Assembly (NCBI RefSeq): GCF_006345805.1
Contig: NC_043005.1
Location: forward strand, 868,001-932,000
Source: Octopus sinensis
Lineage: Eukaryota
Length of the DNA: 64,000 nucleotides
Reading direction: 5' to 3'
In this document: in pieces, positions 12,343 through 61,794 of the stretch
Layout of the letters: each line of letters starts with the position of its first letter
Numbering within the stretch: position 1 is the first letter of the stretch
Notes under the pieces: generated by a model
What the model was told of the DNA's origin: nothing
Seen by the model: only the letters and a program-made list of their open reading frames with translations
The model's database searches: none
Made by a program: the position numbers and the translations under genes

Positions 12343-12434
12343 GCCATCTAAGTGAAGATAACCACTCTTGGCAATTCAGACATGTACCTTTTATAAAAGT
12401 ACTTTCCAAAGTGCAGATTCCTAGTTAGGTGAAC

Positions 12435-31803: not shown

Positions 31804-32238
31804 ATGGACAACACAACCATCACTACTTCACCACCTGTTGCTAATACAACTGATCTCCTCACCACTGCTGCTCTTACAGATATTAATATTACTGCAACCA
31901 CTGTGAGTATCAATAATATTGAAACTTTTCAAGATTCTGATGAAGATGTCAAACTCTTTGACTTGAAGAGAAAGTTACACTCTGAAGGCTGTAAGTCAAA
32001 CCACATGACAGATACTAAATATTTAGAAACTAATGGATTACTCCTAGAATTCCACAGCAAAGCAAAGAAGAGGAGGGGCCGAAAACCGAAAATGGTGCAC
32101 CCAAAATCATGTGATAGTGAAGGATTGAAGGAAGAAATAGAACAGTGTCTAGAGAAGAAAAAGACAAAAAGTTGTAAAAGAAAATTACACAGCCATCAAA
32201 TCCCTTTAAGCCCCCAGAAAGATCTTGGAAACAAGGCA
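31804..32238 (+). CDS. DNMT3: DNMT3-like gene, coding exon 1 (Thr-rich/basic N-terminus, KKRRGRKPK motif)
   Basis: Polypyrimidine tract and CCAG acceptor at 31754; in-frame TAG at 31768-31770 upstream of ATG 31804; donor GCA|GTAAGT at 32239. 435 nt, phase 0, joins in frame to the PWWP exon. The track ORF 31804..32289 runs on into the intron. Confidence 0.75.
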
Positions 32239-33017
32239 GTAAGTTATTTTACAACAAGGTTGTATTTTGTTTTAAAGTCTTTGAAATAATTTATTTAATA
32301 ACTGAAAGTTGCTGGAAGATTGCTAAGACTGAGCAGATTATCTCGTTATCTGATTAATTTCAAGTGTTTGTTTACAACCAACCTTTTACTTTCAAGAATC
32401 TTGTATTTTTAGACAATCCTTGAATATTGGTTTTGTAGATTAAAAAAAATCTTACCTGTAAGCCTACAGCTAGCATTTTCCTATCTCTATGCTACTAGCT
32501 TCGTCTTCTCTCTGTTTCTTATATATTGCTACTATAAGCTGCTACTCCATTTGTTCTTAGTGTACACATTGCACTCTGCTTGTAAACCCTTTGTCCAATT
32601 CTTTCCTACTCTTGACACTTGCAATTTTCTATAATTCCTTTTTGCCAACATTTTCTTTTCAATTAGTGTCAGTTCAAATATTAACCATTCTAACCTCATC
32701 AAATTTTCTTCTGTTCATGTCCAAAGCAACTTACTTAGAATGGTGGATACTCTTAAATATCATTTGTAAATGAAGAATAAACAATTTTGATGTTGCTAAA
32801 GTATATTTTAGCAACTGAAAAATAACATATTAGAAACATTTTGTTACTAGTGAAAACCTTACAAATGACGGCTGAATAAAATATCCACCCAACATTAAAC
32901 AGCAGAGAAAAATAGATGTTCACTATCAGATATAAATTATATTTTTCTTTCAGATGTTATGGATTCATAGCGGAATGATTTTAAATTTACGTTTAAATGT
33001 TTGTCTCTATTGTCCAG

Positions 33018-33164
33018 TGTTTTCCTGTTGGCAGTGTAATATGGGGTAAATTATCTGGATTCAAACCGTGGCCAGGATTAGTAATAAATCATGAAGACAT
33101 ACAGAAAAAGTCATCTCCATTAACTGTGTGGGTTTTATGGTTTGGTGACTATAAAATCTCAGAG
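33018..33164 (+). CDS. DNMT3: DNMT3-like coding exon 2, PWWP domain (CFPVGSVIWGKLSGFKPWPG...VWVLWFGDYKISE)
   Basis: Acceptor TGTCCAG|, donor GAG|GTATGT, 147 nt, phase 0-0. Matches the DNMT3 PWWP pattern (VWGKxxGFxWWPG...WVMWFGDGKFS). Confidence 0.9.
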
Positions 33165-33560
33165 GTATGTTATCTTCTATTTCATATGTTTAATGTCTGG
33201 CAAGTTAACAAATTTTGTCAGAAATAGATATCTGTCTAATTTATCTGTGTGTGTGTGTGTGTGATTCATATTCTTTAACTGTTGGAAGGACTAGGTGGAC
33301 TGTAACCAAGGATGCCTGCTGCATCAAATACAATTAGTAAAGTAAATGCTTGTAAACTTAGTCTCACATGCTCTCCTCTTTGGTGCATTTGTTTCTTTTT
33401 CTAACCTGAAAGTTCACTGGTGATTAGTGAGTCTACTGTTTTTTGCCTGTAAAATAGTGTCCAATTAATATCTGGTCATTGTGTGTGCCTGTGGTATGGT
33501 GTGCCTGTGTGTATGTACACAACACACACACACACTTGAGGTTTTTCTTTGTAATTTCAG

Positions 33561-33659
33561 TTACCACTTTCTAAAGTGACTCGTTTTGACCAGTACTTTT
33601 ATTTGAATTATAAGAATCCTTCCAAAGTGTTCAGTGTGGCTGTTACAGAAGCTCTAGAG
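33561..33659 (+). CDS. DNMT3: DNMT3-like coding exon 3, PWWP helical part (LPLSKVTRFDQYFYLNYKNPSKVFSVAVTEALE)
   Basis: Acceptor TTTCAG|, donor GAG|GTAAGT, 99 nt, phase 0-0. The end resembles DNMT3A/B KAIYEVLQ / KAMYHALE. Confidence 0.85.
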
Positions 33660-34199
33660 GTAAGTGTACTGTGAGTTGTTGCTTTATTTATTTGTGTATA
33701 ATGCACAAATGCTTGGAAAAAATATCTTTTATAATATTCACTTACTGCTCTTTAGTGTTGTGATGTATGGAGAAAAAACCCAAAAGATTCATATTTATTA
33801 TAACTGCAATATAAAACATACTGTAAAAGTTGATGTAAGCTAAACAAAACAAATTTGAATGATGTTTGAACTTTATTAGTGTTGCTGTGTATCACTAAAC
33901 TATCTGAATCGAAAATATTGAAACCCCTATGATATAAGACTATATAAGCAGCAACATGTTTATATTTCATTAGTGTTTGAAAATGATGTTATGCTAATAG
34001 AAGTTTCTTTTTGATACTGTGGTTCTGGTCATTTCTCAGTCAATTTTACTAATTGGCAACTGAATTTCCCCCAAGTAGATATATGTGAACCAGTGAAACC
34101 TCTACATGGTTACCAGATATGTTACAAAAAGCAGCTGAATCTCCCTAAAATTACAACCTTCTGTCTCGAAACAATGAGCAAGACCTCAGCATATTAGAA

Positions 34200-35740
34200 A
34201 TGGTATCTGGACAAAATCCCCTGAAGAGGACAAAATCCCCTGGTGGTCAATATTACACCTCAGGAATATTGATGAATTACCTTGTTTGTTATAAACTGAT
34301 GAATTGCCTGTTTTTTTTAAAAATCTTACTTTTTATTAAAACAGTAGTACAGTCGCTTGCTTGTTTTATTTTTTTATGGCTTATACAGTTGTCCTCAGGG
34401 TGGTGAGGAATTTTTTTAATATAAACCTACTTAACTTCCACCCATAGAAGATGGAGCTTGTGAAGAGTAACAAAGGAAAGTTGAAATTATTTCAAGAGGG
34501 ATATATTTATGTAAAGCAGAAAGATTTGGCAAATGGTATGTTATCTTAGGAATGTGAATGATGGAGGTCTAAGGCATCCTGTAAAGCAAATGTAAAAACG
34601 TGGAAAGGTGAGATTATTAAACCATTTCACAGTCAAACACCAGATACACTGAAGTGTGAAGCTGCAAAAGTGTCTCAAGAAATTAAAAAATGTGCATCAG
34701 AAACTGGAGAGAGTCTACAACAAATTATTGCCAAAGCTGGTATAGGAAGAGGTAGCTACAAAAATACCTTCCCTTCAGATCCTTCAACGAGATGTATGAT
34801 GCTATAAACAGAAAGAAAGGAACTATTTACCATTGCCATCATATGCTAAAGATCTTGTTATACGTGAAAACTGTAAAAACAGCCAATGGTAAAAAATTTT
34901 TGTTGCATGAAAATTTGATGACAAGAGGATTTTGATATTTGAAATGGCTAAAAGCATAGAATTTCTAAAAAATTCTCTTTGGTGTTTTAATGGAACACTT
35001 AAAGTAGCTTCTGAAGTTTTTAGCCACTTTTATACGATTCATGCCATAGTAGATCAACACACTATACCCTGTACCTATGCATTCTTGCCGGATAAGACTC
35101 AGATAACTTATAACAAATCAATACAGGAATTAAAGAACTTAACAAATTGCACCCCCTGTGACTGCAATGATAGATTTTGAAAAAGCAATGCTGAATACTT
35201 TATTTGTGCACTTTCCTGGAAATAATGTTAAAAGTTTCTTCTTTCATTTGTGTCAAAAATTATATAAGAAAATGCAAGAGTTTGGCTTTCAAAAGCATTA
35301 TCAAGACAATATTGAATTTTCTCTCAAAATAAGGATGGTAGCAACCCTTGTCTTCATACTCATTGAATCTGTTCAGGCAGCTTTTGAAGAGATCTTTGAT
35401 ATTATGCCAGAAGAAGCTTTGCCAGTTTTGGATTACTGTGGAGATAATTGTATGTCAACGAGGATGCCAAGAACCAACATTTAGCCTGTCATTTTGGAAT
35501 ATGCTCACAAGAACAAACACTGAACTTCATTGTTTGAATAATTCTATCAAAGGATGGCACCGGCACTTTGTATCATTTGCTGGGTGTTCCCATCTAGTCA
35601 TCATGAAGTTTATGATTATTTTAGGATGAGGAATTAACTTTCAAAATGTTCAGATGACTCCGATTATTGCTGGTGTCACAACTGAACCACCGCAAAAGAA
35701 ATATCGGTTGTGCAAAAATACCAGGAAAAACATCTTGTCT
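34200..35740 (+). mobile_element. Degraded Mutator-like (MULE, FLYWCH-type) transposon in DNMT3 intron 3
   Basis: MELVKSNKGK...GYIYVKQK, WCFNGTLK..FYTIH, DFEKAM..FHLCQ, NNSIKGWHRHF; GGACAAAATCCCC repeats at about 34208-34240. Confidence 0.75.
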
Positions 35741-36669: not shown

Positions 36670-36790
36670 GTATGTGCACAGCGTAGTGGTTTGAAACAAG
36701 ATGAACTTAGCTCAGAACATTTGTTTAACTGGGCAAAACACCGTTTTATGGAAATGGTTGAGGATAAAGATCCATTTCTACCTTTGAAAG
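36670..36790 (+). CDS. DNMT3: DNMT3-like coding exon 4 (VCAQRSGL...LFNWAKHRF...PLK)
   Basis: Acceptor TTCCAG|, donor AAG|GTCAGG, 121 nt, phase 0-1. VCAQRSG and the W-A-x3-F motif parallel DNMT3A VASSRAG and WALGGF. Confidence 0.8.
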
Positions 36791-36879
36791 GTCAGGTTTG
36801 TTCACTTTTGCATTTTAGAATCACCTGAAATGTTAACATAATTTTTCTCCATCTTACTATTTGTTGTATGTGGATCAAG

Positions 36880-38050
36880 AGAGCATGCCCTCTGACCCCA
36901 GCGAAATTGATGTTCTTAATGTTCTGATTAAACTGTTACAAGTCAATACCTGCAGGGAGGAGATCCAAGGAGGCCAATATCGTAGAGAGAAAGTACTAAA
37001 CTTAATGGTTAGTGCAGAGTCTGCAGTGATTAAATACAACACAGATGATGAGAGGAGGTGACAGAAGAAGACCAGTGAGCTTGACGAACAGAGGCCATTA
37101 GTGTGTGATAGAAAAGGCACAGGAGACAATATATCTGAGGATCAGAGACTGGAGCATGTTTATGAATGATTTAATTTCAATAAGTTCAGTGGCTTTTCTC
37201 TGGATGCAGGAGCAGTATTTAGTTGTGTGTCTCACTTGAGCTTCATAGAGTATCAGCACTTGTTGAGTATCTTCTAGCCCTGAAAAGAGAAGTCCAGTCT
37301 TTGAGACACTGTCCTAGCAATGTTAAGGATGTACTTTCACCAAGAGTAATCCTTGGAGATAGTGATGCCCAACATTTGAAGGCTCTGGTTGAGTACTGCT
37401 CATGTAAATGTAGTGATGCTTTCCTGATATGAGCAGTGCTTGTGTTTTCTTGTTGAAAGACATAAGATTTACATGGTTCATTGGAGGATGCTTTCAACCA
37501 GGTAGAAGCAGCCTGACACAGCTCTTGCAGCACTATGGTAGTGCAGGGCTTGGAATTTGCCAGTATTAAACTGCATGTTATTTTCCTCAGCCTACCTGTA
37601 TATTACATCCAACTCCTGTTGCAGATGCACAACATTTCAGAGATTTTTGTATCATCTGCATAACTAGCAAGGATAGCTATCTGGGTAGCTGAGGAGATGT
37701 CTGAAAAGGTCAGTATGAATAGCAGTGGGCCAAATACAGGGCCCTGTGGGACACATTGAAAGTTACACAAACAGCTGAACTAGGTGCCACTGCATGGTAC
37801 CAAAAATCCCAACATTGCCATCAAGATACTGGACCAGATGATGCAAAGTTTGGGTTTCAAGGACCTACAGTTCTTTAGTATCTTCCCATAAAGCCTGAGA
37901 GACCTGTATTGTGTAGATGTAGATGTCTTCAAAACAAAACTGAATTTTCTCCTATCAAGAGTTCCAGATGAACCTATTTTGTGCAAGGGACACAGATGAA
38001 AGTAGCAACATCAAATTCTCTCAGTCACATATCAGTGGAGGTTTAATGAA
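36880..38050. mobile_element. Old LINE (CR1/L2-like) RT fragments in both orientations
   Basis: Minus-strand LGITISKD-like and VPQGPVFGP remnants; plus-strand VDVFKTKL..RVPDEP remnant. Confidence 0.55.
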
Positions 38051-38124
38051 AGTGTAGCAAGGCTAATAGTGGTGGCCTAGAATGGCCACTGTTCTTGAGC
38101 TGAAACTAGTAAAGAAAATAAAGA

Positions 38125-38204
<80 letters not shown>

Positions 38205-38334
38205 ATGTGATCTGATCAATCAATAAGTATCTGGACTGTTGCCATAGTAACAAAGTGAAAGCACACAGAGTAAGGCTGCTTGGCACAGATTAACATTGAA
38301 ATCTTCTGTTGTGCATGCATACTAAATTTTAATG

Positions 38335-39060
38335 TTCTGGTTCATTTCCACTGTTTACAGCAGTGCTTGGAAGGAAGGTGTGTAGCATGTGATCGTCACA
38401 TTAACCATAACAGAGGAAGTTGAGCAGAGAATCTGAATCAAATTTTGCCAAAAGCTTGGCGATACCTGCTCAGAAGCCTACATAAAGTTTTGAAAAAGTT
38501 TTCATTGTTCTCAACACAATCAAGGAAATATTGTGCAGCCCAAACCTGAGTGTCTTTTTGGTCAGCTGAAAGCAGTTTTGGCACAAACTTGGCAGACATG
38601 AGTCTCATACCCAAATCTTCAGTGATAATGGACTAAACTGAACCGTAACTAATATGCACATCCTCTGATAACTCACAGATGGTGATTCAATGATTTCCCC
38701 TCATAGCTGCATGCACATCTGAGATGTTTTCTTCAGTTCTGCTGGTTGCAGGTCTCCCAGAACATTTGTCAATATCGATATTTCTTCGGCCATCTTGGAA
38801 ACATCTGAACCACTCGTACACTTGTGTGTGAGTCATACACTCTTCTCTATACAGTTTCTGCAACTTTGCCTAGGCCATGACAACTTTCTCTGTCATGGTC
38901 GATGCAATGATCACATACTACACACCTTCCTTCCAAATACTGCTGTACACAGTGGAAGTAAGCTAGAACGATAAAACTTAGTGCGCATGCACAGCAGAGT
39001 TCAAGGTCAGTCTTTGTCGCACTCCAGCTATACAAGTCATGCATTGCATGGCCATTTTTT
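38335..39060. mobile_element. Two converging mariner-like 5' fragments
   Basis: 38340-38490 (+) matches the reverse complement of about 38800-38965; minus-strand VYEWFRCFQDG and AKFVPKLL motifs. Confidence 0.65.
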
Positions 39061-39949
39061 ATATAAATCAAAAATAAATTTGATGACATAATTTATTTGT
39101 TACTCTGTCAAAAAGTCTTCAAAATTATTGAAAATGAAACTAAGTAGTTAATTTTCTTTGAAAAGACATCAACTGCAATATAAACATAGCATTAGTTGGA
39201 TTATTGAAGATAGCTCTATTCTAACCTTATTTCCCATCCCGTTAAAAATAGCTTCAAAATCTTACAATGTTAAAAATGCATAATGGCACTTGTCTTTGGT
39301 CTCCTTTTGTAATCGGTGTCCAGAAAGACTAATCATATGGTTGAATGGATTTGACCGTTTGACCTCTGTCTAAAAATAAAAGCCCTTTCAAAATTCTTTG
39401 TTAGTCAGATCCAAAGTTTTGATAACCAACAAAATTATTTTCTCTTTGATATTTAATGTTTATTGTTACGTTGCTGAACTTTTTTTTATCTATCCCATGT
39501 AAGTTAAAATTTTTCCCTTTTGACCAGGGTCTTTCATTGCTTTGTTGATTTATTAAGATTATTTTCCATTTTATTCAAATTGACTTTCAATTCAAGCACA
39601 CATGCGTGCAGATATTTCTTTTATAAAATCTTTTGAACTTATGTCAATCTTATGTCAATTGAAAAAGATTTACTTCAACAACTGATTAAGATAGACGACT
39701 TCTATAACAATGTAACAAATATATTTGACCTGAAAGATCAAAGAATTTATATATAAATGAGGTATGTAAATAATAATTTTTGGTACATCTTTAAAAAAAA
39801 ATTTAAATGCATTAAAGCATCAACTATCATGGGCATGTTATGAAACTAATTTGGTTCTCTTAATTAAACAATTTTAGAAAATGAATTAGCTCAACCAATA
39901 AGTATGAATGTGGGTTGAAACATTCTATGAAGGAGTGCCACTAGAAATC

Positions 39950-41580
39950 TTGCCTGCATTCATTTCAGCTCTGCATATTTATAACTGCATTGTTTCCTTG
40001 CAAGTAAACTGACACCTGACTGTTCAGAAAAGACTTCAAAAGTAACTAGTTGCAACTTCTCTTGAAAATCAATCAAATTTGGCATCGTAGTGTTATCACA
40101 AATCTTCAGAAAAAGGCTTTAGCCCACAAGGACGTTCATGCTGAAATGGTTTCTGCATTACCGGATGATGCTTAAGCTTTATCAACAGTGTAAAAGTAGA
40201 CAGTTAAATTTAGGAGGAGAAGGGAGAGTCTTGAAAATGACCCAAGGTCTGGATGCCCCACAACTGCCACCACCGAGGAAAACATTGTGTTCACCATCAT
40301 CATCATTGTTCGACTGTGGTCGAGAAAATGGAATTTACTATGCTACGCCAGACTTCACGGTCCATCATAGCATTACGGAGGTCCTGTTGCTGGATGCCTG
40401 TATCCCTGGAGATTATATCAGGGTAGGAGAGTGTGCACCCTCTGGTATCACGAGTAGATGGCTTCCAGAGAAGAAGAGCAGAAATTACCTCGTTTTCAGC
40501 TCTACAACAATGTCCAGCAAACTGGACTCTTCTACCTTTCACAAGAGATGATACAGGTAGTAGTTTCCCATATATTTGCACTTTGGTTGGATGACGCTTC
40601 CACGAGAGATTTTGAGCTCTCATTAGGAGGCGAGTGTAAGTGCCATCCAACCGCCTCTCAAGCTTCTTTGATAACGTCCAGGTTTCTGAGCCATATAGTA
40701 GAATTGGTTTGATTGTGGTTTTGAAGCTTTTAAGTTTGAAATCTCTACTTAGATTTGATGACCTCCACATGTGTTCACCACATGTTGACGGATAACAGGC
40801 AATTGACTATAAATCAAATAGCCAATATTATTGGCATATCCTGTGAAGAGAGTATTCTGCACAATGAACTTGGCATGATGAAAGTTCATGCTTGATGGGT
40901 TCCATGACTTCTGACACCTGATCAAATGCACACCAGGTTGGTCACATGACTGGAAAATCGGACATTGTTTGACACAGATCCAGCCAGTCTTCTTGAATGT
41001 ATCCTAACGCATGATGAGCGTTAGGGTCATCACTTTAAGCCAGAGACAATCAGTGCAGAGGAAACGCCCCTCGCCTGCTTGATAGAAAGCCAAGGTTGTT
41101 TCATCTGCAGGGAAGGTCATGGCCTTAGTTATTTGGTATGCAAAAGGTGTTGTGTTTATTTACCTCTTCCAAAGGGCCATATCATCAATGCAATGTACTA
41201 TGCCAACATGCTGGGGCAGTTACAAAACGCCCAGCAAAACTGATGGAAGGGGTCCTCCTTTGTCAGGACAATGCTCCAGCACACATCCTTGGTTTCAATG
41301 GCTGCTATGCATGAATGACTTCTAACTAGTTGCTCACCATCCCCTATTCTCTTGATTTGGCTGTCTGTCTGTCATCTGTTTGCTAACATGAAAATGCACG
41401 GCTAGGAACCAGTATCACTATGATGAGGTCATATCTGCTGTTGATAAATTTTTGGTGCCCAGGAAGAAAGTTTTTCACCAATGGGCTCCAAGCACCGCAG
41501 CATCATTGTAAGAAGTGTAGGGACTACAAGTGTGGGAGGGGGGGTCTATGTTGAAAAATAAACCTTATTTGGTCACATTT
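39950..41580 (+). mobile_element. Degraded mariner transposon interrupted by a LINE fragment
   Basis: DDPRSG.P.TATTEENI-, WVP.LLT-, SAGKVMA.V.W.AKG- and HHPYS.DLA-like motifs with stops. Confidence 0.8.
40297..40769 (-). mobile_element. 5'-truncated RTE/RTE-X-type LINE fragment with 11-bp TSD
   Basis: ORF ILLYGSETWTL...VQFAGHC; (ATG)n tail; TSD TGTGTTCACCA at 40286-40296 and 40770-40780. Confidence 0.85.
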
Positions 41581-41699
41581 CATCTTTTCAATCAACCCTT
41601 GTATTTATTGCATGACCAACTTCAAGAGTCACCGCATGCCACTGATATGTGTGTGTATGTGTAAAAAAAAATCATTGATAGGGTATTACCCAACCTTAA

Positions 41700-42395
41700 G
41701 TCTAAAAGTAGGTTAGCCTCTGGTTTGATACCCAAGAGGTGGTTGGATGGTTTAAGCTTCTAGAAATTAGTAAGAATAGTAAATTCTTGCTATAGAAAAC
41801 TATTAACCTGATTGTTGTTAATCAAGCCCTGATTTATGGCATGAAAAATTCCAATTTGTCCCAACACGAAATAGATATTATACTTGCCGTGCAAACCACT
41901 CTAGTAGATTTCGATGGTAGATTATGGTGTAGATTAGATGGGGAAAATGCATTTGATATAGAAATGGGCTCACATTCTGCTCAGGCCAGTGACCTAGTCA
42001 GAATATATATCCTTTCATTAATCCAGTCTTCCTTTCTGGAATAAAGTCTGTATAGGGGTAATGCTTTATTTTTTCTGGACAGAAGCAACAAAGTACAGTT
42101 AGAAAACATAGGAAAAATTTCTTTAAAGTTTTCAAAAATTTAGGACTAAATATTACTATGGGTAAAGATTATCGTAGAGTGAATTTTCTTGATGCTACCT
42201 TCTGTCTTGATACTGAATTATTTGAACGATTTCATATGCCAAATAATCATATTTAGTACATTAACGTAGCATCCAACCATCCAACCTCGATTATATGGGG
42301 ATTAGTTAAGGATATTTCTACAAGAATTTCTAGATTTTCTGTTAATAATAAAATTTTTGAATCACATGCAACTTCTTATAATGCTGCTCTAGCTA
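41700..42395 (+). mobile_element. Penelope-like RT remnant
   Basis: FDIEMGSH..SDLV.IYILS, LYRG, VNFLDATF and YINVASNHPTSII motifs. Confidence 0.7.
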
Positions 42396-42749
42396 GGGCT
42401 GGGTTATGTGAAAAAATTCAGTATATACACGAAGCAGGCATACACAACACTGGTAATTCATCCAACTGTGATACGCATTGTACACCACCACAATGTCACG
42501 GTTTGAGAACTCACTCATATAAGGAATACAGACGAAGAAGAATTGTTGGAAGTATAAATAATTTGAATAACATCTGCATTTGACTCCATTTCTTAATTTA
42601 TCTATGTCATACAAAAATATTTCACTTAACCCTGGAATTGGTACCTTTATGAGTAGGCTGTAATATCCTTGGCACTCGTGAATTTTTGCTACCCTAGTAA
42701 CTGTTTTTTTCCGTGTTATTTGTATACATTGAAAAAATACACACACGTG

Positions 42750-42995
42750 ACACGTAAAAAGCACCAACTAATTGTGGCCGTTTGCCAGCCTCCTCTGGCC
42801 ACTATGTCGGTGGCATTTAAAAAGCACCCACTACACTCACGGAGTGGTTGGCGTTAGGAAGGGCATCCAGCAGTAGAAACACTGCCAGATCAGACTGGAG
42901 CCTGGTGCAGCCTTCTGGCTTCACAGACCCCGGTTGAACTGTCCAACCCATGCTAGCATGGAAAACGGACGTTAAACGATGATGATGATGATGCA
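42750..42995 (+). mobile_element. RTE 3' tail fragment
   Basis: Conserved tail motifs and (GAT)n. Confidence 0.8.
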
Positions 42996-43231
42996 TGTGT
43001 GTGTATATATGTGTGTGTGTGTATGGGGAAAGTAAGAAGAAAAAAGCGAAAATGCACATTGAATATAAAAAAATAAAGGCTTTTTTATGAAAAGTAGCGA
43101 TAAATAAATACAATTAGATGAACTGAGATAGAATTAAGAGGAATTAAATTCATTATTTTGAATTGTTAAAAAGATTCAAAGTTAAACTGGTGTCAGCATA
43201 GCTGTTCACTCGCTTTGGATGTGTGTGTGTG

Positions 43232-43267
<36 letters not shown>

Positions 43268-43897
43268 TATGTGTTTATGTCCCTGTAACTTAGCGGTTCG
43301 GCAAAAGAGACCGATAGAATAAGTTCTCGACTTACTAAGAATAAGTCCTGGAGACGATTTGCTTGACTAGAGGTGGTGCTCCAGCATGGCCGTAGTCAGA
43401 TGGCTGAAACAAGTAAAAGTGTGAGTGTATTGAGTATGATGTTAGATTAGGACCAGCCTGTGCTCAGTCCTTCTGTATGTTAGTCTGTGTGGTTGGTGTA
43501 GTACAGAGGACCTGGGAGCTAAACTAGGTACAAGTGGAATGAATAGGAGCATGCAAGAGTGTAGAGTGTGTTGCTACCGGGACTTGATGTGTACGAAGGA
43601 TATAACAAGATGACAGATGGGTGTAGAAGTGTTGTGGGGATTTGGGTGGAAAGAAACTATTGAAGGGGAACGCTAAGGAAGACTTGGGTGATAAAACTGA
43701 TCTCAGGAAGCTGAACTTCACGAAGATGATAAAGAAACACTGTCTGTGTTGTCTTGTCCCTCCTTTGTGACAAAAGGCAAGGCACTGTGTTGGAAAGCAT
43801 GTAAAAATGATGATGATATATATGTGTGTGTGTGCGTATATTCTTAAATTTACCAGCAAAATCTTCATGTTGGGTGACTTGTTAACCCAACATGCTG

Positions 43898-43929
<32 letters not shown>

Positions 43930-45674
43930 CAATATAATAAATCTGCAACCCTACTACTAAAAGGTGTTGCTCCAACTTGGCCACAGGTCTAATGCCTGAA
44001 ACCAGTAAAAGAAGCATATGTGTCATACAGTAAACCCCAACAAATTAGTTTATGGGATGGGTGGTATGGATGATAGCTTATCCTTAACCTTTTAGCATTT
44101 ATACTGGTCATTTAAGGCCCTGTTTTAACGACTTGTAGGGCCTCCATCTCAGAAGCATATGTATTTTAGATAGTGCCTGTAAATGAACGACCCAGTCCAC
44201 CTAGCTGTTAATAGGTAGTGCAGTGTAGAGGACAAACTCACAGCTTTAAAAGTGTTAGAATTGATGAGATTGTTTACTTGTTTGTAGAGCAGGGTTCAAC
44301 CTGTACTGCAGGTCATAGAGATCAGGATCACTTCATATGGTTATTGGAGTAGTGGCACCAGTTGAGAGCATTTTCTCTACTTTGTGTTGAGTGCATTCTG
44401 TGGATGGCAATTATAGCACTAAAGTTCAAGATAACTAGCTGATGCAGAGTCAGTGGCTTGCATCCTGTACACTGGCCATCATTTCATTGTGTTCAAGACA
44501 CTCACAAATGACTTGGTTTGTCTGCTTATAAGTAAAAATTCACTGTTGGAAGCAGTGGGTTAGATTATAGCCTATTGGGTTCTGGACAACTATATTACTA
44601 CTCTTGTTGTTTCTAGCAGAAGGGGCTGAAACAAAAGGCTCAGAGTAATATGAAGGGGAAGGACTGGATAATATGTATTAAATAGGGTTCCTTTCCCCAC
44701 CAGATTTATTTTGATTTTATCATGATTTTTCAAAAAGAAAACAAAAAAAAACTCATACTTATATTTTACAATTAACTCCCTCTTCCCTAAATTTTAACTG
44801 AATAAAAATTGCTTTAAGGAGAGAATTTATTCATATTTTTTAAAAAATCAAATAATTTATCATTTCGAAAATGGTAAATATCTTTTTTTTTATTTATAAA
44901 ATATATTTTTAAATTCAATACCAGTTCAAATATGTTGGGAATATATTCAAACCTACAAGAAAGCCATTCCATGTGTTTTGTCATGGAGAAAATTTCTTGC
45001 TATTGACAAAATTTTTAAATGTTAGAAACCCCCTTTGTCCCACAGAACCCTTGGAATTTTTTTCCATAGAACCTAGTCTAAGAAATTCTTGCAATAAGGC
45101 ATTCATTCAGTGTTTCGAATTACTTATTCTACCAGACACAAAGCTCCTATGCTGTCACTGAACCACTCAACATGCTAGAAATAGCAATTAAATCTCTTTC
45201 AAATTACACTTTACTTTTTTTTTTCAAAATCCTATTGGATTGTCCTAGGCACACTGTTTGTTAAAAGATCGGAGGATGGTCAGTATTGGAATGTCTTTGA
45301 CCATAAGGTGTGCTCAATCTGGGATGACTTGTGGCTAAACAACAACTCTGCCACATCTGTCACTAAATTATTAATTAGTTACATTAATTAAAAAGGTAAA
45401 AATTTTTGTTGTTGTTTTGTTTTGGCATTTCAATTATATCAAAGGCATGGTTTTTTTAAGGGACAGTAAAACAGATAATTAATTAAAGCCTGTTCGTGTT
45501 GTTTATGTTCAACAGTGTGTGTGTGGACTTAATTTGAATTTTGATATATTTTCTTGTCTTCCCTCACACATGATGAGGTCTTTTGACAATCAAATTCTAC
45601 CTCCTTAATAATTTCTCATTTGTTATGTTTTCATCTAGTTTTCTGTATGGTGTGTTCTTTCTGTTCAACCCTTG

Positions 45675-45683
45675 ATTTATATA

Positions 45684-45715
<32 letters not shown>

Positions 45716-45761
45716 AATATATGTGTATATGTATATATATATATATATGTATATATATAAA

Positions 45762-45803
<42 letters not shown>

Positions 45804-45833
45804 AATATGTATATATGTATATATATATATGTG

Positions 45834-45865
<32 letters not shown>

Positions 45866-46023
45866 CATACATACACACACACGTGTATGTATGCATTTCT
45901 ATGTATATGTATGCATATGTATGTATGAACATATATGTGTATTTGTATATATGTATGTGTATATGTATATATATATGTGTCGGTGTGTGTATCTATATAT
46001 GTATGTATATATATATATATATA
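45675..46023. repeat. Compound (TA)n/(TATG)n microsatellite
   Basis: Directly visible. Confidence 0.95.
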
Positions 46024-46024
46024 T

Positions 46025-46380
46025 CATCCGAGCGTGGCCGTCTGCCAGCCTTGTCTGGCACCTGTGTCGGTGGCACATAAAAAACACCATCTGAGCGTGG
46101 CCGTCTGCCAGCCTCGTCTGGCACCTGTGTCGGTGGCACATAAAAAACACCATCCGAGCGTGGCCGTTTGCCAGCCTCGTCTGGCACCTGTGTCGGTGGC
46201 ACATAAAATCACCCACTACACTCTCGGAGTGGTTGGCGTTAGGAAGGGCATCCAGCTGTAGAAACACTGCCAGATCTGACTGGACTGGTGCAGCTTTCGG
46301 GCTCCCCAGACCCCAGTTGAACCGTCCAACCCATGCTAGCATGGAAAGCGGACGTTAAATGATGATGATGATGATGATGA

Positions 46381-46385
<5 letters not shown>
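46025..46385 (+). mobile_element. RTE 3' tail with three ~60-bp subrepeats, embedded in (TA)n
   Basis: CATC(C/T)GAGCGTGGCCG...GTCGGTGGCACATAAAA x3, then the conserved tail. Confidence 0.85.
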
Positions 46386-46437
<52 letters not shown>

Positions 46438-46984
46438 TATGTATTGATTAAGTCTTTCCTTGTTTGATTTGCAAAATAGTAGTTTTGTCTCGAATTAATA
46501 TTATATATATATATATAATTTTTCAAGTGAACACACAATTGCTGATTTTGCAACAAGTAAAAATGTTCTAAAATCTCTCTAAGAGATCAATGCAGTGGTT
46601 GTAGCCACCTTAACATGGATTTTACTGCGATTTTTTTAAAACCCTAAGAGGACATATCTTCTAACTGGTTAACGATGCACGGCTGCATCTGATAAAATTG
46701 TGAGCAGGGGAGTGAACACCTACCACCTCCTAGTGATGGGACCACAGCTGTGCATTATCAACCAGCTAGAGGAGATGTTCTCTTTGAGTGCAAAAATTGC
46801 AGTATAGTCTGCTTGAATGGACAGCCATGTTAAGGTGGCTACAAATCTTACTTCTCATTACAACTACTGTGTTGATCTCTTAGATTTTAGAAATAGGTTT
46901 TGAGTTTTGTGATCAATGAGCCATTGTCTTTTAAACAATCTTGTTCAACATTACCTGTTACTCTTAAAAGTATATGTATGTATA

Positions 46985-47300
46985 TCATCATCGTTTAGCG
47001 TCCGTTTTCCATGCTAGCATGGGTTGGACGGTTCTACTGGGGTCTGAAGCCAGAAGGCTTCATCAGGCCCAGTCAAATCTGGCAGTGTTTCTATGGCTGG
47101 ATGCCCTTCCTAATGCCAACCACTCCGTGAGTGTAGTGGGTGCTTTTTACGTGCCACCCGCACAGGTGCCAGACAGAGCTGGCAAACGGCCATGAACGGA
47201 TGGTGCTTTTTATGTGCCGCCGGCACGAGACCAGTTGGGGCGGTGCTGGCAACGGTCGCGAAACGGAAGGTTCTCTTACATGCCATGATAGCATGGGTAG
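46985..47300 (-). mobile_element. RTE 3' tail fragment
   Basis: Reverse complement of the conserved tail. Confidence 0.8.
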
Positions 47301-47479
47301 GACAGTTTGATGGGGTTCAGTGGGTTCAAGTATTATGCCTTGCTCTAATATTTCATATTTTTTTATGGTTTCTGTGGCTGGTGTGAACTTCCTTATACCA
47401 ACCACTTCACAGAGTATACAGAAATAGCTTTTTCTTTTTTATGGTACCAGCACTATAGAGGTTAACTTAAGGAAACTAC

Positions 47480-48400
47480 TGGACATTTTTTGTGGCACCA
47501 GCACTGTTTAGGTCACCTAGCAATGCGAAAAAAGATCTCTCAAGATGCAAGGAAAAGATTTATTGTGAGAGAATGGTAATGGAGAGAATAACAGAAGGAA
47601 CTGTGTAAGACTAATGGATGCAGAGGAGAGGGAAAGAGTAATGTTAGGTATTAGTGTGAAGGAGACAAAATGGTTATAGAATGGGTTGAGTAATGCCACG
47701 CCAGTATGGGTTGACAGAGTGTGATAGGGAAAAGACTAACAAAGACAGTATTAGATAAAGTGGTTGGTGAGAGGATAGAGAGGTGATGGGGGTGTACTAC
47801 ACTGTTACACATGGGTGAGTAATGGGAGGGACAGGTAAAGTTAGTGGGATTTGAGGGAGGGAGTCAGAATAATAATGGAGATGTAGTGCTAGCTTACATT
47901 ATATATGGATGGTTAGAGTGGTTTGTGGAGGAAAGATTAGGTGATAAAGTGGGGCCATGGCATATCTTCAAGATAACATTTGCAAGAGATCATGGTGACT
48001 GAAAAATCAGTGATGGTGGGTAAAAGTTGCCAGAGTGCAGCCCCTCCCTATTCAAGCATCATGATATGAGAGGAAGGAGGGGAGCAGGATATATGTATGG
48101 AGGTATGGAGAAGGGGAGATATTCAGTATGCAAAAAGTGGATAATTTCCTCTCAGTTATTGGAGGCATGGCACAGTGAGTAGAAGAGATAAGTGGATACA
48201 GAATAGATACAAATTGTTTGGAGAATAGATGATGGAATGGGATGTAGATATAAAATGGGCAGCAGACAGTGTGCGCAAGTACAGAATCATAGTTAAGGGA
48301 AATCATGGTGTATGCATTAAATTGTACTGGAGGTTGAACCTTCTACAGTATCCTGAATCATCAGTGGAATCCATCAGTTACCATTTTCATTAGCTATAAC
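47480..48400 (-). mobile_element. Highly degraded Penelope-like RT remnant
   Basis: Purine-rich + strand; weak similarity to Penelope RT motifs only. Confidence 0.35.
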
Positions 48401-48479
48401 ATCTTGACATAATTTTCCACATTTCCCCGAGTCTCCCATTCACATCACATGCCCCATCACAAGTGCAGTCTCCTTTTAC

Positions 48480-49340
48480 CTACTAAATCTGCTGCTTGTT
48501 TGCTTCTCATTTCATGCACACTTACATGGCACCTGCTTGCCTCATTTCTTTCTAGTCTTTGCATTTATAAGCCATTCTTGCTGCTATGTACAGTGCACTT
48601 TGCACGCAAGCATCATATAATTTAGCTTTCATCGTGAAAAGTAAGCTCTTCTTGTTGCCACTAGAGATAATAGTTCTTTAAACTATATCCAATGTTATCT
48701 TATTCTAGCTATCACATTTTCAAAACAGCCACCCCTGTTGCTAGTTTAGTCACCTAGATAACAAAAGCAGTCTAAGCATTTGAGAGTGTTCCCAAGTGCT
48801 TACTGCCCCAGTTCACATGAAATCTATCTTCTTGGTCCACCCATCTGTGATCCCAGTACACCTTTTGTGTGTCCAGACCCTTCAGTTCTATATTATACTT
48901 CCATATGTGGAATTTCTGCTCCAGTTCTTCTGAATTTGCTATAAGAGTTAGGTCATTAAAATATTGTGTTCCTAAGGGCAGCCTGTCCTAAATACCTCTG
49001 GCATGGCTTGGAGGAGTGAGAGAAATTGGAAGCGACCGAGAACTGAGTCCTGATGTGCTTCCACCAACATACTAAATTCACCACTGAACTATTTTGCTGA
49101 TTTTCATCTTGCTGACTGCCCTTTGTATTTAACTTGTGTGGTCCTCAGAAATCGTTCATCTATTCATAGTTTCCTAAGTGATCACTAAATTATAGTATGA
49201 GGGACCTTGTTAAAGGCGTTCCATAGCTTGACAAACACTAGGTATAGGGGTTTATTCAGTCATACATTTGTCTTGCAGTTGTCTCATAACTTTACACCTC
49301 TTCCTAGAAAAATGCCAGATTGCCTTTCATCTAAATATAC
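48480..49340 (-). mobile_element. Old RTE remnant
   Basis: Degenerate KP.YL.FV...KAF and LLFTMKA-like segments. Confidence 0.5.
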
Positions 49341-49341
49341 C

Positions 49342-52300
49342 TTATCCTTAATCCCACAACATAGACTGGTAGTTAGTGACTTTAGGATCAGGACTAGGAG
49401 GACAACCAGAAGACGACAAATATGGAGAAGAAGGATCTGGAAGCTTAAAGATCCTGCAAATGGACAGAGATTTAGGGACATATTACTTGAAGCCTCTGAC
49501 GAAGTAGAAGGGGATAGAGCATCACAGGGGGTAGAAGACAGCTGGACGTTTCTAAGGGACAACCTGCTGAGAGCCACTGACCAGATCTGTGGCTGGTGCA
49601 AAGTCCCCTCTCGACCTAGAATAACGTGGTGGTGGAACAATATTGTAGACAGGGCTATTAGAGAAAAGAGACAGGCTTGGAAGGTCTGGAAAAATGGGGG
49701 TAGCAGGGAATTGTATCAGACTGCCAAAAGAGAAGCTAGGAGACAGGTTTATTTAGCCAGAGGGGAAGCAGATAAGAAAAAATTTGCCAATGTTCTGCGC
49801 CGTGTGGACCAAAGACTGGAGGTGTTTCGTGTTGCAAGACAGTGTGTGAGAGAGAATCGTGATGTGGTAGGAGAGAAGTGTGTTCGCATGGAAGATGGTT
49901 CACTTGCGCTAAATGAGGATGCAAAGAGAGAGGTTTGGAGATGCCACTATGAAAGGTTGCTGAATGAAGAAAATGAATGGGATAAAGAGAGTCTGCCGAA
50001 TGTTGACCCAACAGAGGGACCAGCTATCCGAGTTGATAGTTCTGTGGTAGCTAAGGCAATTAGAAGCATGAAGACAGGGAAAGCCCCAGGCCCATCAGGA
50101 ATCACTGCAGAGATGCTCAAAATGTCTGGTAGTGTCGGCTATAGCCTAGTCACCCATATAGTTAATCAGGTGATACACAAAGGGGTCATACCCAATGACT
50201 GGTGTAGCAGTATAATAGTCAACTGCTACAAAGGTAAAGGTGATGCCCTAGATACAAATAACTACAGAGGTATCAAGCTGTTGGACCAGGTGATGAAGGT
50301 TACGGAGAGGGGCATAGCCCAACTAATTAGAGAGAGAGTTAGTTTAGATGAGATGCAGTTTGGGTTTGTGCCAGGGAAAAGTACTACTGATGCTATATTC
50401 CTGGTAAGGCAGCTGCAGGAGAAATACCTAGCCAAAGATAAGCCCCTGTACCTGGCTTTTGTTGACATGGAGAAAGCCTTCGACAGGGTCCCCCGATCCC
50501 TTATCTGGTGGGCAATGAGAAAACTAGGGATAGATGAATGGTTAGTGAGAGCTGTGCGGGCCATGTATAGGGACGCCGCTAGTAGGGTGAGGGTTGGAAA
50601 TGAGTACAGTGAAGAATTCCGGGTAGAGGTAGGGGTCCACCAAGGCTCAGTACTCAGCCCCCTCCTATTTATCTTAGTCCTCCAGGCAATAACGGAGGAA
50701 TTCAAGACAGGATGCCCTTGGGAGCTCCTCTATGCTGATGACCTTGCTCTAATTGCTGAGTCGCTATCAGAACTGGAGGAGAAGTTTCAGGTGTGGAAAC
50801 AAGGATTAGAATCGAAGGGCCTCAGAGTCAATCTAGCTAAAACCAAAGTCGTAATCAGTAGGAAGGTAGACAAATCACAAACACCTTCAGGTAGATGGCC
50901 CTGCTCGATCTGTAGAAAAGGTGTAGGTAGAAACTCTATAAGATGCACCAAGTGTAAGCTATGGACACATAAGAGATGCAGCAATGTCAAAGGAAGGCTA
51001 ACTAGGAAGATGGTTTTTGTATGTGGCAGATGCTCAGGAACAATAAACACTGAAAATGCTCTGAGACCAACTTCCGTCACTTTCCAGGGAGAAAAACTAG
51101 AAATAGTTGATAGTTTCCGTTACCTAGGTGACCAAGTCAGCAGCGGGGGCGGGTGTGCTGAAAGTGTAACTGCTAGAGTAAGAATAGCTTGGGCAAAGTT
51201 CAGAGAGCTCTTACCTCTGCTGGTGACAAAAGGCCTCTCGCACAGAGTGAAAGGCAGACTGTATGATGCGTGTGTACGAACAGCCATGCTACATGGCAGT
51301 GAAACATGGGCCGTGACTGCTGAGGATATGCGTAAGCTCGCTAGAAATGAAGCCAGTATGCTCCGATGGATGTGTAATGCCGGTACTCACACTCGGCAGA
51401 GTGTAAGTACCTTGAGAGAAAAGCTGGACCTAAGAAGCATCAGTTGTGGTGTGCAAGAGAGACGTTTGCGCTGGTATGGTCATGTGGCGAGAATGGATGA
51501 AGATAGTTGTGTGAAAAAGTGCCACACCCTAGCGGTTGAGGGAACCTGTGGAAGAGGCAGACCCAGGAAAACCTGGGACGAGGTGGTGAAGCACGACCTT
51601 CGAACTTTAGGTCTCACCGAGGAAATGACTAGAGACCGAGACCTCTGGAAGTGTGCTGTGCGCGAGAAGACCCGGCAGGACAAGTGAGTCCACAACCCGT
51701 GGCCTTCTACATGGGATGGAGCCAGCCTACGTATGCATACCTTCCCTACTTGGGACACAAAACTCTACTTGTGAAGACCTGTTGAGGCAAGTGAGGATCA
51801 GAATCGAAATCGATCAATGGAAATTGCGGATGTGCTACCAGTGCCGGTGGCATGTCGAAACTCTGCTTGTGAAGACCCATTGAGGCAAGTGAGGATCAGA
51901 ATCGAAATCGATCAATGGAAATCGATCAATGGAAATTGCAGATGTGTTACCAGTGCCGGTGGCATGTAAGAGAACTTTCCGTTTCGCGACCGTTGCCAGC
52001 ACCGCCCTGTTTCGTGTCCGTTGCCAGCCTCGCCTGGCCCTCGTGCCGGTGGCACATAAAAAGCATCATCCGTTCGTGGCCGTTTGCCAGCTCTGTCTGG
52101 CACCAGTGCGGGTGGCACGTAAAAAGCACCCACTACACTCACGGAGTGGTTGGCGTTAGGAAGGGCATCCAGCCGTAGAAACACTGCCAGATTTGACTGG
52201 GCCTGATGAAGCCTTCTGGCTTCACAGACCCCAGTAGAACCGTCCAACCCATGCTAGCATGGAAAACGGACGCTAAATGATGATGATGATGATGATGATG
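49342..52300 (+). mobile_element. Young 5'-truncated RTE LINE in DNMT3 intron 4
   Basis: Roughly 90% similar by eye to 21460-24294; duplicated ~100-bp 3' UTR block at 51760-51965; (GAT)n tail. Confidence 0.95.
49345..51687 (+). CDS. RTE ORF2 remnant with uninterrupted RT and PHD-like finger
   Basis: Open from PQHRLVVSDF to the stop. The first ~45 codons of track ORF 49207..51687 come from the flanking element. Most of the endonuclease is missing. Confidence 0.85.
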   Translation, partial: SLIPQHRLVVSDFRIRTRRTTRRRQIWRRRIWKLKDPANGQRFRDILLEASDEVEGDRASQGVEDSWTFLRDNLLRATDQICGWCKVPSRPRITWWWNNIVDRAIREKRQAWKVWKNGGSRELYQTAKREARRQVYLARGEADKKKFANVLRRVDQRLEVFRVARQCVRENRDVVGEKCVRMEDGSLALNEDAKREVWRCHYERLLNEENEWDKESLPNVDPTEGPAIRVDSSVVAKAIRSMKTGKAPGPSGITAEMLKMSGSVGYSLVTHIVNQVIHKGVIPNDWCSSIIVNCYKGKGDALDTNNYRGIKLLDQVMKVTERGIAQLIRERVSLDEMQFGFVPGKSTTDAIFLVRQLQEKYLAKDKPLYLAFVDMEKAFDRVPRSLIWWAMRKLGIDEWLVRAVRAMYRDAASRVRVGNEYSEEFRVEVGVHQGSVLSPLLFILVLQAITEEFKTGCPWELLYADDLALIAESLSELEEKFQVWKQGLESKGLRVNLAKTKVVISRKVDKSQTPSGRWPCSICRKGVGRNSIRCTKCKLWTHKRCSNVKGRLTRKMVFVCGRCSGTINTENALRPTSVTFQGEKLEIVDSFRYLGDQVSSGGGCAESVTARVRIAWAKFRELLPLLVTKGLSHRVKGRLYDACVRTAMLHGSETWAVTAEDMRKLARNEASMLRWMCNAGTHTRQSVSTLREKLDLRSISCGVQERRLRWYGHVARMDEDSCVKKCHTLAVEGTCGRGRPRKTWDEVVKHDLRTLGLTEEMTRDRDLWKCAVREKTRQDK

Positions 52301-52536
52301 TAACTTCCATAGTCTTGTCCAACAATTTCGTATTTCTTTTAGCAGCATCTGTTATTTTACTTGATTTGCAACATTGGACTGTGGCCTTGCTGGGGCACCA
52401 CCCTGGAGGGTTTTGTCAAATTGTTCCCAGTATTTATTTTATCAGTCCATTTTATTGAACCACTAAGTTACATATTCTTAAACAGTCCAATATTACTGCT
52501 GTCAGGCATAAAGTAAAATACCATGCACACGCGTGT

Positions 52537-52567
<31 letters not shown>

Positions 52568-52782
52568 GGGCTTCTACCCAGTTTCTGGTCATCAAATGCG
52601 CTGGAAAGGAACTGATCAAACTAGGATTGAATCTGATTTTGAAGCAATCGTCTCCACCATATAGCCATGCCTGTTCCTTATAATGAATTTGCTTTTACAA
52701 TCTGCCATATCAAGTCTATAAAGTAAATTTTTATTATTACATCAACAGTTATATAATATTGTTTTCACATTTTTCACTTCAG

Positions 52783-52899
52783 GAGATCCATATCCACAAT
52801 TTGTTAAACGAAAGCTACAACCAATATTCAAGACAGCTGAAAATATCGAGGAAGAACCAGTTCGAGTATCATCCCCACCCAATCCACTTTTTGAAAACA
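52783..52899 (+). CDS. DNMT3: DNMT3-like coding exon 5, linker (DPYPQFVKRKLQPIFKTAENIEEEPVRVSSPPNPLFEN)
   Basis: Acceptor TTTTCACTTCAG|, donor ACA|GTGAGA, 117 nt, phase 1-1, open frame continuous with exons 4 and 6. Confidence 0.65.
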
Positions 52900-53794: not shown

Positions 53795-53839
53795 ATGATC
53801 TCATAAATAAACTGAAGACTAATCTAGTAAAAATTCAAG
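53795..53839 (+). CDS. DNMT3: DNMT3-like coding exon 6 (NDLINKLKTNLVKIQ)
   Basis: Acceptor TTTTAACAG|, donor AAG|GTGAGT, 45 nt, phase 1-1; positionally like the helix that precedes the ADD domain. Confidence 0.65.
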
Positions 53840-53949
53840 GTGAGTCACTCATTTATTAATATTATTTTTTATTTTATTGTGGATCTTTTGAGTTGTTAAA
53901 TTTGTTACCAGTAATCTATTAATTTCAATAAAAGTTGCTATACTCTTTC

Positions 53950-56525: not shown

Positions 56526-56835
56526 AGCACGTAAAAGCACCATCCATTCATGTCCGTTGCCAGCCTCGCCTGGCCCCGTGCTGGTGGCACATAAAAGCAC
56601 CATCCGTCGTGGCCGTTTGCCAGCCCCGTCTGGCACCTGTGCGGGTGGCACGTAAAAAGCACCCACTACACTCACGGAGTGGTTGGCGTTAGGAAGGGCA
56701 TCCAGCCGTAAAAACACTGCCAGATCAGACTGGGCCTGATGCAGCCTTCTGGCTTCACAGACCCTAGTTGAACCGTCCAACCCATGCTAGCATGAAAAGC
56801 GGACGCTAAATGATGATGATGATGATGATGATGAA
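56525..56835 (+). mobile_element. Young RTE 3' tail
   Basis: Subrepeats, conserved tail and (GAT)n. Confidence 0.85.
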
Positions 56836-60700: not shown

Positions 60701-60980
60701 TAATTATCTCTCCTACCGATATCGTTTTGATGTTCGGCATCTGCTGCAGACGTACAGACATATAGTCAGGGAAGCTGGTCACAAAAGCCAGCTTCACCAT
60801 CCATTCCATTGCTGCTCTGTTAGGCCCACCAATCTTCTAATTTCGCTCACATAATTATCTATCTGCTCGCCAGTTTATCTCACCTTCCCGAGCTTGCTAT
60901 AGGCTTTAAAAGACCCTTCTGTGTATGTGTCCTTCAGCCATTGTTCAATTTTTTTCTGCTTTCTCTTGATCTGCTTCATC
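57740..60980 (-). mobile_element. Degraded Ty3/Gypsy LTR retrotransposon (gag, PR, RT, RNase H, IN); LTRs not identified
   Basis: Two CCHC-like knuckles (about 60480-60570), protease DTG, RT VLDFRKLN and YIDN, RNase H-like region, integrase-like ERHY..IKAM; domain order is Gypsy-type. Confidence 0.85.
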
Positions 60981-61430
60981 CGTCTCCAGGTAGAGTTCCA
61001 GTGGATAAAATGCCTTATGGTATTAATTCTGTAAGGCAGTTAATTTTGTCATCCTTTGGGGGATTGATAAAGTACTATCTATGGTAACTCCGCTGCAACT
61101 GTAACATTGAAAACATGTTAAATTTATGACTTCATGAGAAGATACAACTGAAACGTAACTGAAACTGTTGAGGTTTATTCTTTCAGAAGATATTTTGGAG
61201 GATAGGGATTTGATGTGAACACAAAAGCAGAGCTTGTGTTAATGGCAGTAATTCAATGGAAATAGTTAATCTCTCTCTTAGAGTAGAAGCAAAACATATT
61301 GTTTTGCTGTTCAGATAAATAAAAGTGAATAGGTAAAGAGGGAAGGAGTTTCATGTTACAAGTATCCTTAAAGATTCAGTTGTTGGTGACATCACAGTGC
61401 TGCTGGTAGTGGTCGTAATAAATATGGCAC

Positions 61431-61665
61431 AAGGCGGTGAGCTGGCAGAACTGTTAGCACGACGGGCGAAAAGCGTAGCCGTATTTCGTCTGCCGTTACA
61501 TTCTGAGTTCAAATTCCGCTGAGGTCAACTTTGCTGCTCATCCTTTCGGGGTCAATAAATTAAGTATCAGTTACACACTGGGGTTGATGTAATCGACCTA
61601 ATCCGTTTGTCTGTCCTTGTTTGTCCCCTCTGTGTTTAGGCCCCTGTGGGCAATAAAGAAACAGC
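61431..61665 (+). mobile_element. tRNA-derived SINE, second family
   Basis: GGCGGTGAGCTGGCAG head, GAGTTCAAATTCC box B, CATCCTTTCGGGGTCAATAAATTAAGTA core. Confidence 0.8.
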
Positions 61666-61708
61666 TAATAAACATGGCATAGTGTAAATAATATTGCCTT
61701 TTTTCCAG

Positions 61709-61794
61709 AAATCTGTATTGGCTGTAAGTCATCAGACAGAATAATTGTGGCACAGCATCCATTGTTTGAAGGAGGACTCTGTGAGCAGTGCAAG
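61709..61794 (+). CDS. DNMT3: DNMT3-like coding exon 7, first zinc finger of ADD domain (EICIGCKSSDRIIVAQHPLFEGGLCEQCK)
   Basis: Acceptor TTTTCCAG|, donor AAG|GTAATT, 86 nt, phase 1-0. Matches DNMT3A [26 protein letters not shown]. Confidence 0.92.

Follow-up and report, generated by a model that had tools for sequence, protein, structure and literature searches.

Cytosine methylation in octopus is concentrated on the bodies of expressed genes and is sparse on transposons (Macchi et al. 2022, PMC9476566). The main text of that study covers only DNMT1 and UHRF1; its supplementary tables list the Octopus bimaculoides entries 'DNMT3B' and 'DNMT3B.1' (Ocbimv22010486m and Ocbimv22010487m), both of which correspond to LOC106869540 (XP_014770810-14), a gene split in two in the older O. 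bimaculoides annotation. LOC106869540 has DNM3B_MOUSE as its best match and is expressed at 0-6 transcripts per million over tissues, with the highest values in suckers and skin (PMC9476566). The DNMT3 of Nautilus pompilius carries PWWP, ADD, and methyltransferase (MTase) domains, and octopus sequences are mentioned in the trees of that report (2025, PMC12532940). Here we analyze a 64,000-nucleotide (nt) stretch of Octopus sinensis DNA (contig NC_043005.1, positions 868,001 to 932,000 of the forward strand; hereafter, the window). Its positions 31804-61794, on the plus strand, very probably hold the 5′ half (exons 1-7, residues 1-350 of ~750) of an octopus gene, apparently single-copy, that is orthologous to the de novo DNA cytosine-5 methyltransferase DNMT3. 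In full, this gene extends over more than 65 kb and has at least 19 small exons, with introns rich in retrotransposons between them.

The original prediction described seven GT-AG exons with phases 0,0,0,1,1,1,0 that join into 350 open codons, and we reproduced this chain from the join itself. The segments (435+147+99+121+117+45+86 = 1050 nt) read through 350 codons without a stop in frame 0, and the other two frames are full of stops. Exon 1 opens with the ATG at 31804, 12 codons downstream of an in-frame stop. Each of exons 2-7 is directly preceded by a polypyrimidine tract and AG, and the donors of exons 1-7 are all GT (GTAAGT, GTATGT, GTAAGT, GTCAGG, GTGAGA, GTGAGT, and GTAATT, in that order). 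The gene had also been called invisible among the open reading frames (ORFs) of the window; that holds for exons 2-7, which are too short, and fails for exon 1, visible as a 161-amino acid (aa) ORF. The features of this part of the window are as follows, where CAI9728526.1 is a public Octopus vulgaris protein and SRR8281685_169722 a transcript from another cephalopod.

Exon 1, 31804..32238, plus strand: 435 nt, aa 1-145; start codon; donor GTAAGT; identical to the start of CAI9728526.1.
Exon 2, 33018..33164, plus strand: 147 nt, aa 146-194; PWWP core with 'SGFKPWP' and 'LWFGD'; presumed cage residues F160, W163, and W186 plus D189.
Exon 3, 33561..33659, plus strand: 99 nt, aa 195-227; C-terminal helical part of PWWP.
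Exon 4, 36670..36790, plus strand: 121 nt, aa 228-268; PWWP tail and start of the PWWP-ADD linker; aligns to SRR8281685_169722.
Exon 5, 52783..52899, plus strand: 117 nt, aa 268-307; variable linker; present in CAI9728526.1.
Exon 6, 53795..53839, plus strand: 45-nt micro-exon, aa 307-322, encoding 'NDLINKLKTNLVKIQ'; the ADD_DNMT3 match begins here.
Exon 7, 61709..61794, plus strand: 86 nt, aa 322-350; complete GATA-like zinc finger of ADD, C324-x2-C327 ... C346-x2-C349.
Intron 7, first 2.2 kb, 61795..64000, plus strand: the intron is 16 kb in the O. vulgaris reference, where exon 8 (ADD linker) lies ~13.8 kb past the window end.

Past exon 7, the last 2.2 kb of the window hold no further coding exon. 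The product of exon 1 is a Thr/Lys-rich N-terminal region, probably disordered, with a basic patch, KKRRGRKPK, at aa 88-96.

The domain content of the 350-aa product agrees with the proposal that PWWP followed by ADD marks a DNMT3. Both Pfam matches exceed the gathering score: PWWP (PF00855) at aa 150-227 (E 7.1e-11) and ADD_DNMT3 (PF17980) at aa 308-350 (E 7.6e-10), the latter stopping at profile position 44 of 56, where the window ends. In a sequence search of the PDB, the top 15 matches were all DNMT3A or DNMT3B, the best being the DNMT3B PWWP domain (4.9e-23), and DNMT3A chains matched both the PWWP and the ADD segments. Exon 2 is 43% identical to a spider DNMT3 over 58 aa (tblastn, E 4.7e-10). 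F160, W163, W186, and D189 of the PWWP domain are conserved in the alignment to DNMT3A/B; we take them to be the aromatic cage, as counterparts of F303, W306, W330, and D333 of DNMT3A. The GATA-like finger cysteines C324, C327, C346, and C349 are likewise conserved.

The catalytic half of the gene was sought in the O. vulgaris assembly GCA_951406725.2, in a 75-kb locus (OX597823.1 63,866-138,991; L001). Window positions 21824-64000 are colinear with L001 1-35022 at 0.62% substitutions (99.4% identical), and L001 reaches 40 kb beyond the window end. It was queried by tblastn with the spider DNMT3, with DNMT3 catalytic domains from a second database search, and with SRR8281685_169722. The original prediction had pointed downstream for the rest of ADD and for MTase motifs I, IV, and VI, and these are indeed present, intact and in phase, within eleven further canonical exons on the same strand:

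Exon 8, L001 48826-48873, same strand: ADD linker, 'ALDVDN'.
Exon 9, L001 50375-50439, same strand: PHD finger; 65 nt.
Exon 10, L001 51162-51216, same strand: PHD finger.
Exon 11, L001 57857-57991, same strand: PHD finger.
Exon 12, L001 65092-65173, same strand: motif I, FDGIGTG.
Exon 13, L001 67691-67836, same strand.
Exon 14, L001 68728-68821, same strand: motif IV, GGSPCN.
Exon 15, L001 72326-72471, same strand: motif VI, ENV.
Exon 16, L001 73161-73246, same strand: motif VIII, RPRYFWGN.
Exon 17, L001 73756-73831, same strand.
Exon 18, L001 74097-74218, same strand: target recognition domain (TRD), RTVTTRSNS.

The short ADD exons required several probes. A regular-expression search for the PHD finger as a single open segment was empty, as three exons share the finger; exons 9 and 10 came to light in a looser scan for Cys-rich segments. 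Scoring all 522 phase-0/phase-0 AG..GT mini-exons of intron 7 for a vertebrate-like 'DDG' missed linker exon 8, which only the cephalopod transcript, used as a probe, revealed. Additional Logan and NCBI matches tried as sources of a cephalopod ADD proved to be vertebrate or other invertebrate DNMT3s.

The resulting 18-exon chain comprises 701 open codons, with all 17 introns GT-AG and compatible phases throughout. In the 701-aa product, FDGIGTG lies at 473-479, GGSPCN at 539-544, ENV at 589-591, and RPR at 623-625, and D362/D364 of the ADD linker are conserved. Four Pfam families match: PWWP; ADD_DNMT3 (PF17980, 1.7e-14, now over profile positions 4-55 of 56); the PHD finger of the DNMT3 ADD domain (PF21255, 3.2e-9, positions 1-50 of 50), which lies outside the window; and DNA_methylase (PF00145, 2e-14), which is in the reference and not in the window. 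Against the PDB, the product scores 2.9e-105 with DNMT3B and 6.4e-104 with DNMT3A, both over aa 146-701, and 3e-33 with DNMT3L. All 34 PDB matches below 1e-20 are DNMT3A/B/C/L and none is DNMT1; in the second protein search, the matches were named DNMT3A/B/C. L001 ends 0.9 kb after exon 18, and the last ~45 residues (motifs IX/X) lie past the reachable octopus sequence. On the chromosome-scale scaffold OX597823.1 (118 Mb), just ~74 kb separate the start of the DNMT3 gene from one scaffold end.

Transcript data bear on several of these junctions. SRR8281685_169722, a Logan contig, is intron-less, colinear with exons 3-18, and runs to a stop codon, from which we infer that it derives from complementary DNA. 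It is 69% identical to exon 7 and 72% identical in the MTase domain, and it carries motifs IX/X ('FGFPPHYTDV…GKAWSVPV'). It aligns gap-free over exons 6, 7, and 8, in support of junctions 6/7 and 7/8. The distance between the PWWP tail and the ADD finger is 80 aa in the transcript and 77 aa in the window model; this spacing indicates that the model misses no exon from exon 4 to exon 7. At nt 440-460 of the transcript, exon 8 is followed directly by exon 10, last base to first, which confirms both boundaries exactly; exon 9, the first part of the PHD finger, is skipped, with a frameshift and a stop three codons later. Either an unproductive isoform or a choice made in assembly could explain this join. 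CAI9728526.1 backs the 3/4 and 4/5 junctions.

Over the 1050 coding sites, the window and the reference differ at two positions, both synonymous and both in exon 3. Intron divergence predicts 6.6 differences over the same number of sites (Poisson P = 0.04), which is weak but consistent evidence that the coding sequence may be under constraint. CpG is strongly depleted over the 5′ gene body (31500-36000), with observed/expected ratios of 0.0-0.4, and the joined coding sequence has a ratio of 0.24; the ratio in an upstream long interspersed nuclear element (LINE) at 26001-26500 is 0.9. Such depletion could reflect past methylation of the DNMT3 gene body in the germline.

Several observations weigh against a catalytic DNMT3. 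The window itself ends inside ADD, and the catalytic half is seen only in the O. vulgaris reference assembly, which represents another haplotype, another individual, or a sibling species. In that assembly, the last ~45 residues, with motifs IX/X and the stop codon, were not recovered. The junctions of exon 2 rest on homology only, and the public model skips this exon. The sole cross-species transcript lacks exon 9 and is hence frameshifted. Enzymatic activity and histone binding are attributed by homology only, and expression in this species is also inferred. Some of these points would fit a reader-only or catalytically dead gene with a DNMT3L-like function, or one truncated in this genome: the window stops at aa 350, ahead of any catalytic motif, the public model for O. 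vulgaris, at 268 aa, is a domain-less fragment, and the exon-9-skipping transcript would end translation after the GATA finger. We consider this reading highly unlikely. The reference has motifs I, IV, VI, and VIII as well as the TRD, all intact and in phase, 3-40 kb downstream, and the matches to DNMT3A/B (~1e-104) far exceed that to DNMT3L (3e-33). A DNMT3L-type protein has no PWWP domain and degenerate catalytic motifs; the octopus product has a PWWP domain and motifs that are not degenerate. The odd C terminus of CAI9728526.1 is the motif-I exon read in the wrong frame rather than a true truncation. Between the two options left by the original prediction, the intact motifs favor an active de novo methyltransferase over a dead reader, as far as the reference sequence can tell.

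Two further explanations have next to no weight in our judgment. The exons could belong to another PWWP family (PWWP2A/B, MSH6, NSD, ZMYND11, or HDGF-like) or to an ATRX-type ADD gene, and PWWP domains of PWWP2B, MSH6, and ZMYND11 do occur lower in the PDB list. The first of these, PWWP2B, scores 8e-9 compared with 4.9e-23 for DNMT3B, the DNMT3-specific ADD model matches, and a DNMT3-type methyltransferase domain follows downstream on the same strand. ATRX combines ADD with an SNF2 helicase and has neither PWWP nor MTase; the Pfam search of the product gave no helicase match, and the PWWP domain upstream and the DNA_methylase domain downstream of ADD rule ATRX out. Tiny exons scattered within 30 kb of repeat-rich sequence might suggest a pseudogene in decay, or open segments that join only by chance; this is equally improbable. 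The 701 codons in 18 exons show no stop, no frameshift, and only canonical splice sites; the coding differences between window and reference are synonymous only, the functional residues are conserved, and the orthologue is expressed in O. bimaculoides. Octopus DNMT3 is supported as what appears to be an intact, ordinary, conserved gene of the catalytic type.

If the octopus enzyme works as its vertebrate homologues do, the PWWP domain (exons 2-4) would read H3K36me2/3 and bring the enzyme to transcribed gene bodies, by homology to DNMT3A/B. The ADD domain (exons 6-11) would bind the H3 tail unmethylated at K4 and lift autoinhibition of the catalytic domain, with D362/D364 as likely counterparts of acidic residues in the DNMT3A ADD linker. 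The MTase domain (exon 12 to the end, outside the window) would transfer a methyl group from S-adenosyl-methionine to CpG cytosines via the motif-IV cysteine. Targeting through PWWP and H3K36 methylation fits the gene-body-enriched octopus methylome (PMC9476566), and octopus also has SETD2 and NSD homologues, in keeping with the proposed mechanism. An unlikely extension is that cephalopod DNMT3 output is regulated by unproductive or domain-removing splicing; the idea derives from the transcript that skips the 65-nt exon 9 and from the O. vulgaris model, which skips the in-frame 147-nt exon 2 with the PWWP cage. Were these skips real and abundant isoforms, they would yield a PWWP-less or MTase-less DNMT3 and could contribute to the reported, unusually low CpG methylation of octopus (<10%).

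Public annotation of the locus is fragmentary. A search of 5.8 billion proteins with the window product returned only two matches, the spider DNMT3 (37% identity) and CAI9728526.1 (A0AA36F7C4_OCTVU), a 268-aa O. vulgaris 'Hypothetical predicted protein' from the same locus. Its gene range, L001 10001-65126, is the only gene called within the 75 kb. CAI9728526.1 is identical to window exons 1, 3, 4, and 5 and skips exon 2 (the PWWP core) and exons 6-11 (ADD): exon 1 is spliced to exon 3 and exon 5 to exon 12, and no Pfam domain is detectable in the protein. Its C-terminal tail, 'TQFVLPYQVS', was considered as a window-encoded segment and was found instead in the motif-I exon, out of frame. Exons 13-18, the catalytic core, are unannotated in O. 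vulgaris. Judged by its splice pattern, the O. vulgaris public model of the DNMT3 locus is wrong. The 5.8-billion-protein collection did not return a DNMT3 from O. bimaculoides or O. sinensis, though XP_014770810-14 exist; the collection is therefore incomplete, and its negatives are not proof of missing annotation. The idea that O. bimaculoides DNMT3 is unannotated was dropped once LOC106869540 was found in the supplementary tables of PMC9476566.

The original statement that DNMT3 has been inconsistently recovered from octopus annotations was therefore partly right: it describes the domain-less 268-aa fragment of O. vulgaris and the split gene of O. bimaculoides, and it does not describe LOC106869540, which is annotated and has been used as 'DNMT3B'. 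The importance claimed for an intact copy in cephalopod methylation biology was overstated, the gene being already annotated in O. bimaculoides. Octopus DNMT3 is already known, and the only new product is a corrected O. vulgaris gene model. Biologically, the value is modest: the octopus de novo methyltransferase looks complete, with modules for reading H3K36me and H3K4me0, and this fits published cephalopod gene-body methylation. The practical value is an annotation fix. Screening the annotated O. vulgaris proteome by domain, for instance with the hmmsearch approach of the Nautilus study, would falsely report DNMT3 as missing; with the 18-exon model, the record can be corrected and probes, primers, or guide RNAs can be designed.

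The introns are filled with transposable elements, as originally described, with both LINE reverse-transcriptase (RT) ORFs and repeated LINE tails in introns 4 and 6. The principal elements are as follows.

Intron 4, 36791..52782, plus strand: 16 kb, mostly retrotransposon-derived; three insertions absent from the reference.
Insertion 1 in intron 4, 39530-40585: no other copy in the window; absent from the reference.
Insertion 2 in intron 4, 43270-46383: inside a (TA)n microsatellite; ends in a LINE tail and (GAT)n; absent from the reference.
Insertion 3 in intron 4, 49353-52299, plus strand: 2.9-kb 5′-truncated LINE with a (GAT)n tail; ORF 49207-51687, an uninterrupted 826-aa RT/PHD frame.
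RVT_1/endonuclease ORFs (Pfam), 21026-23269, 24999-26204, and 49207-51687 (the last in intron 4), plus strand.
zf-RVT fragment (Pfam), 11852-12409, minus strand.

At the site of the third insertion, the reference has 20 bp of different sequence. This LINE is 92% identical to a copy at 21460-23793, lies in the orientation of DNMT3, and ends 484 bp upstream of exon 5; it looks like a young and polymorphic element. A LINE 3′ tail of ~300 bp ending in (GAT)n occurs at least eight times. In intron 6, minus-strand ORFs of 153 and 304 aa within 58373-60368 combine a D-T-G protease-like start with RT-like sequence. No second copy of them was found in the window, and Pfam gave no match for the minus-strand ORFs 54462-55001, 58373-58834, and 59454-60368. 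The 58373-60368 segment is probably a degraded pol fragment of a long terminal repeat retrotransposon. Window scans for Rfam families and tRNA found none, and no gene other than transposable elements was recognized in 1-31803, a scan that small-exon genes could escape.

Relative to vertebrate DNMT3A and DNMT3B, the octopus gene has the same domain order (PWWP, ADD with GATA-like and PHD fingers, and C5-MTase). The F/W/W plus D residues of the aromatic cage are conserved, as are each of the eight zinc-finger cysteines in the PHD part, the D-x-D within the ADD linker, MTase motifs I, IV, VI, and VIII, and the 'RT(V/I)TTRSNS' loop of the TRD. It differs in its short (145 aa) and unrelated N-terminal region, in 'KPWP' in place of 'SWWP', and in a divergent PWWP-ADD linker. 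It is apparently one gene, whereas vertebrates have an A/B/L family, and it is stretched by LINE-rich introns to at least 65 kb. LOC106869540 of O. bimaculoides is presumably its direct orthologue, an assignment drawn from annotation rather than from alignment. The DNMT3 proteins of Nautilus pompilius (PMC12532940), Lottia, Capitella, and the spider Caerostris are species orthologues that give no hint of a functional difference; they share with the octopus product the combination of PWWP, ADD_DNMT3, and DNA_methylase, at 37-57% identity in the shared domains.

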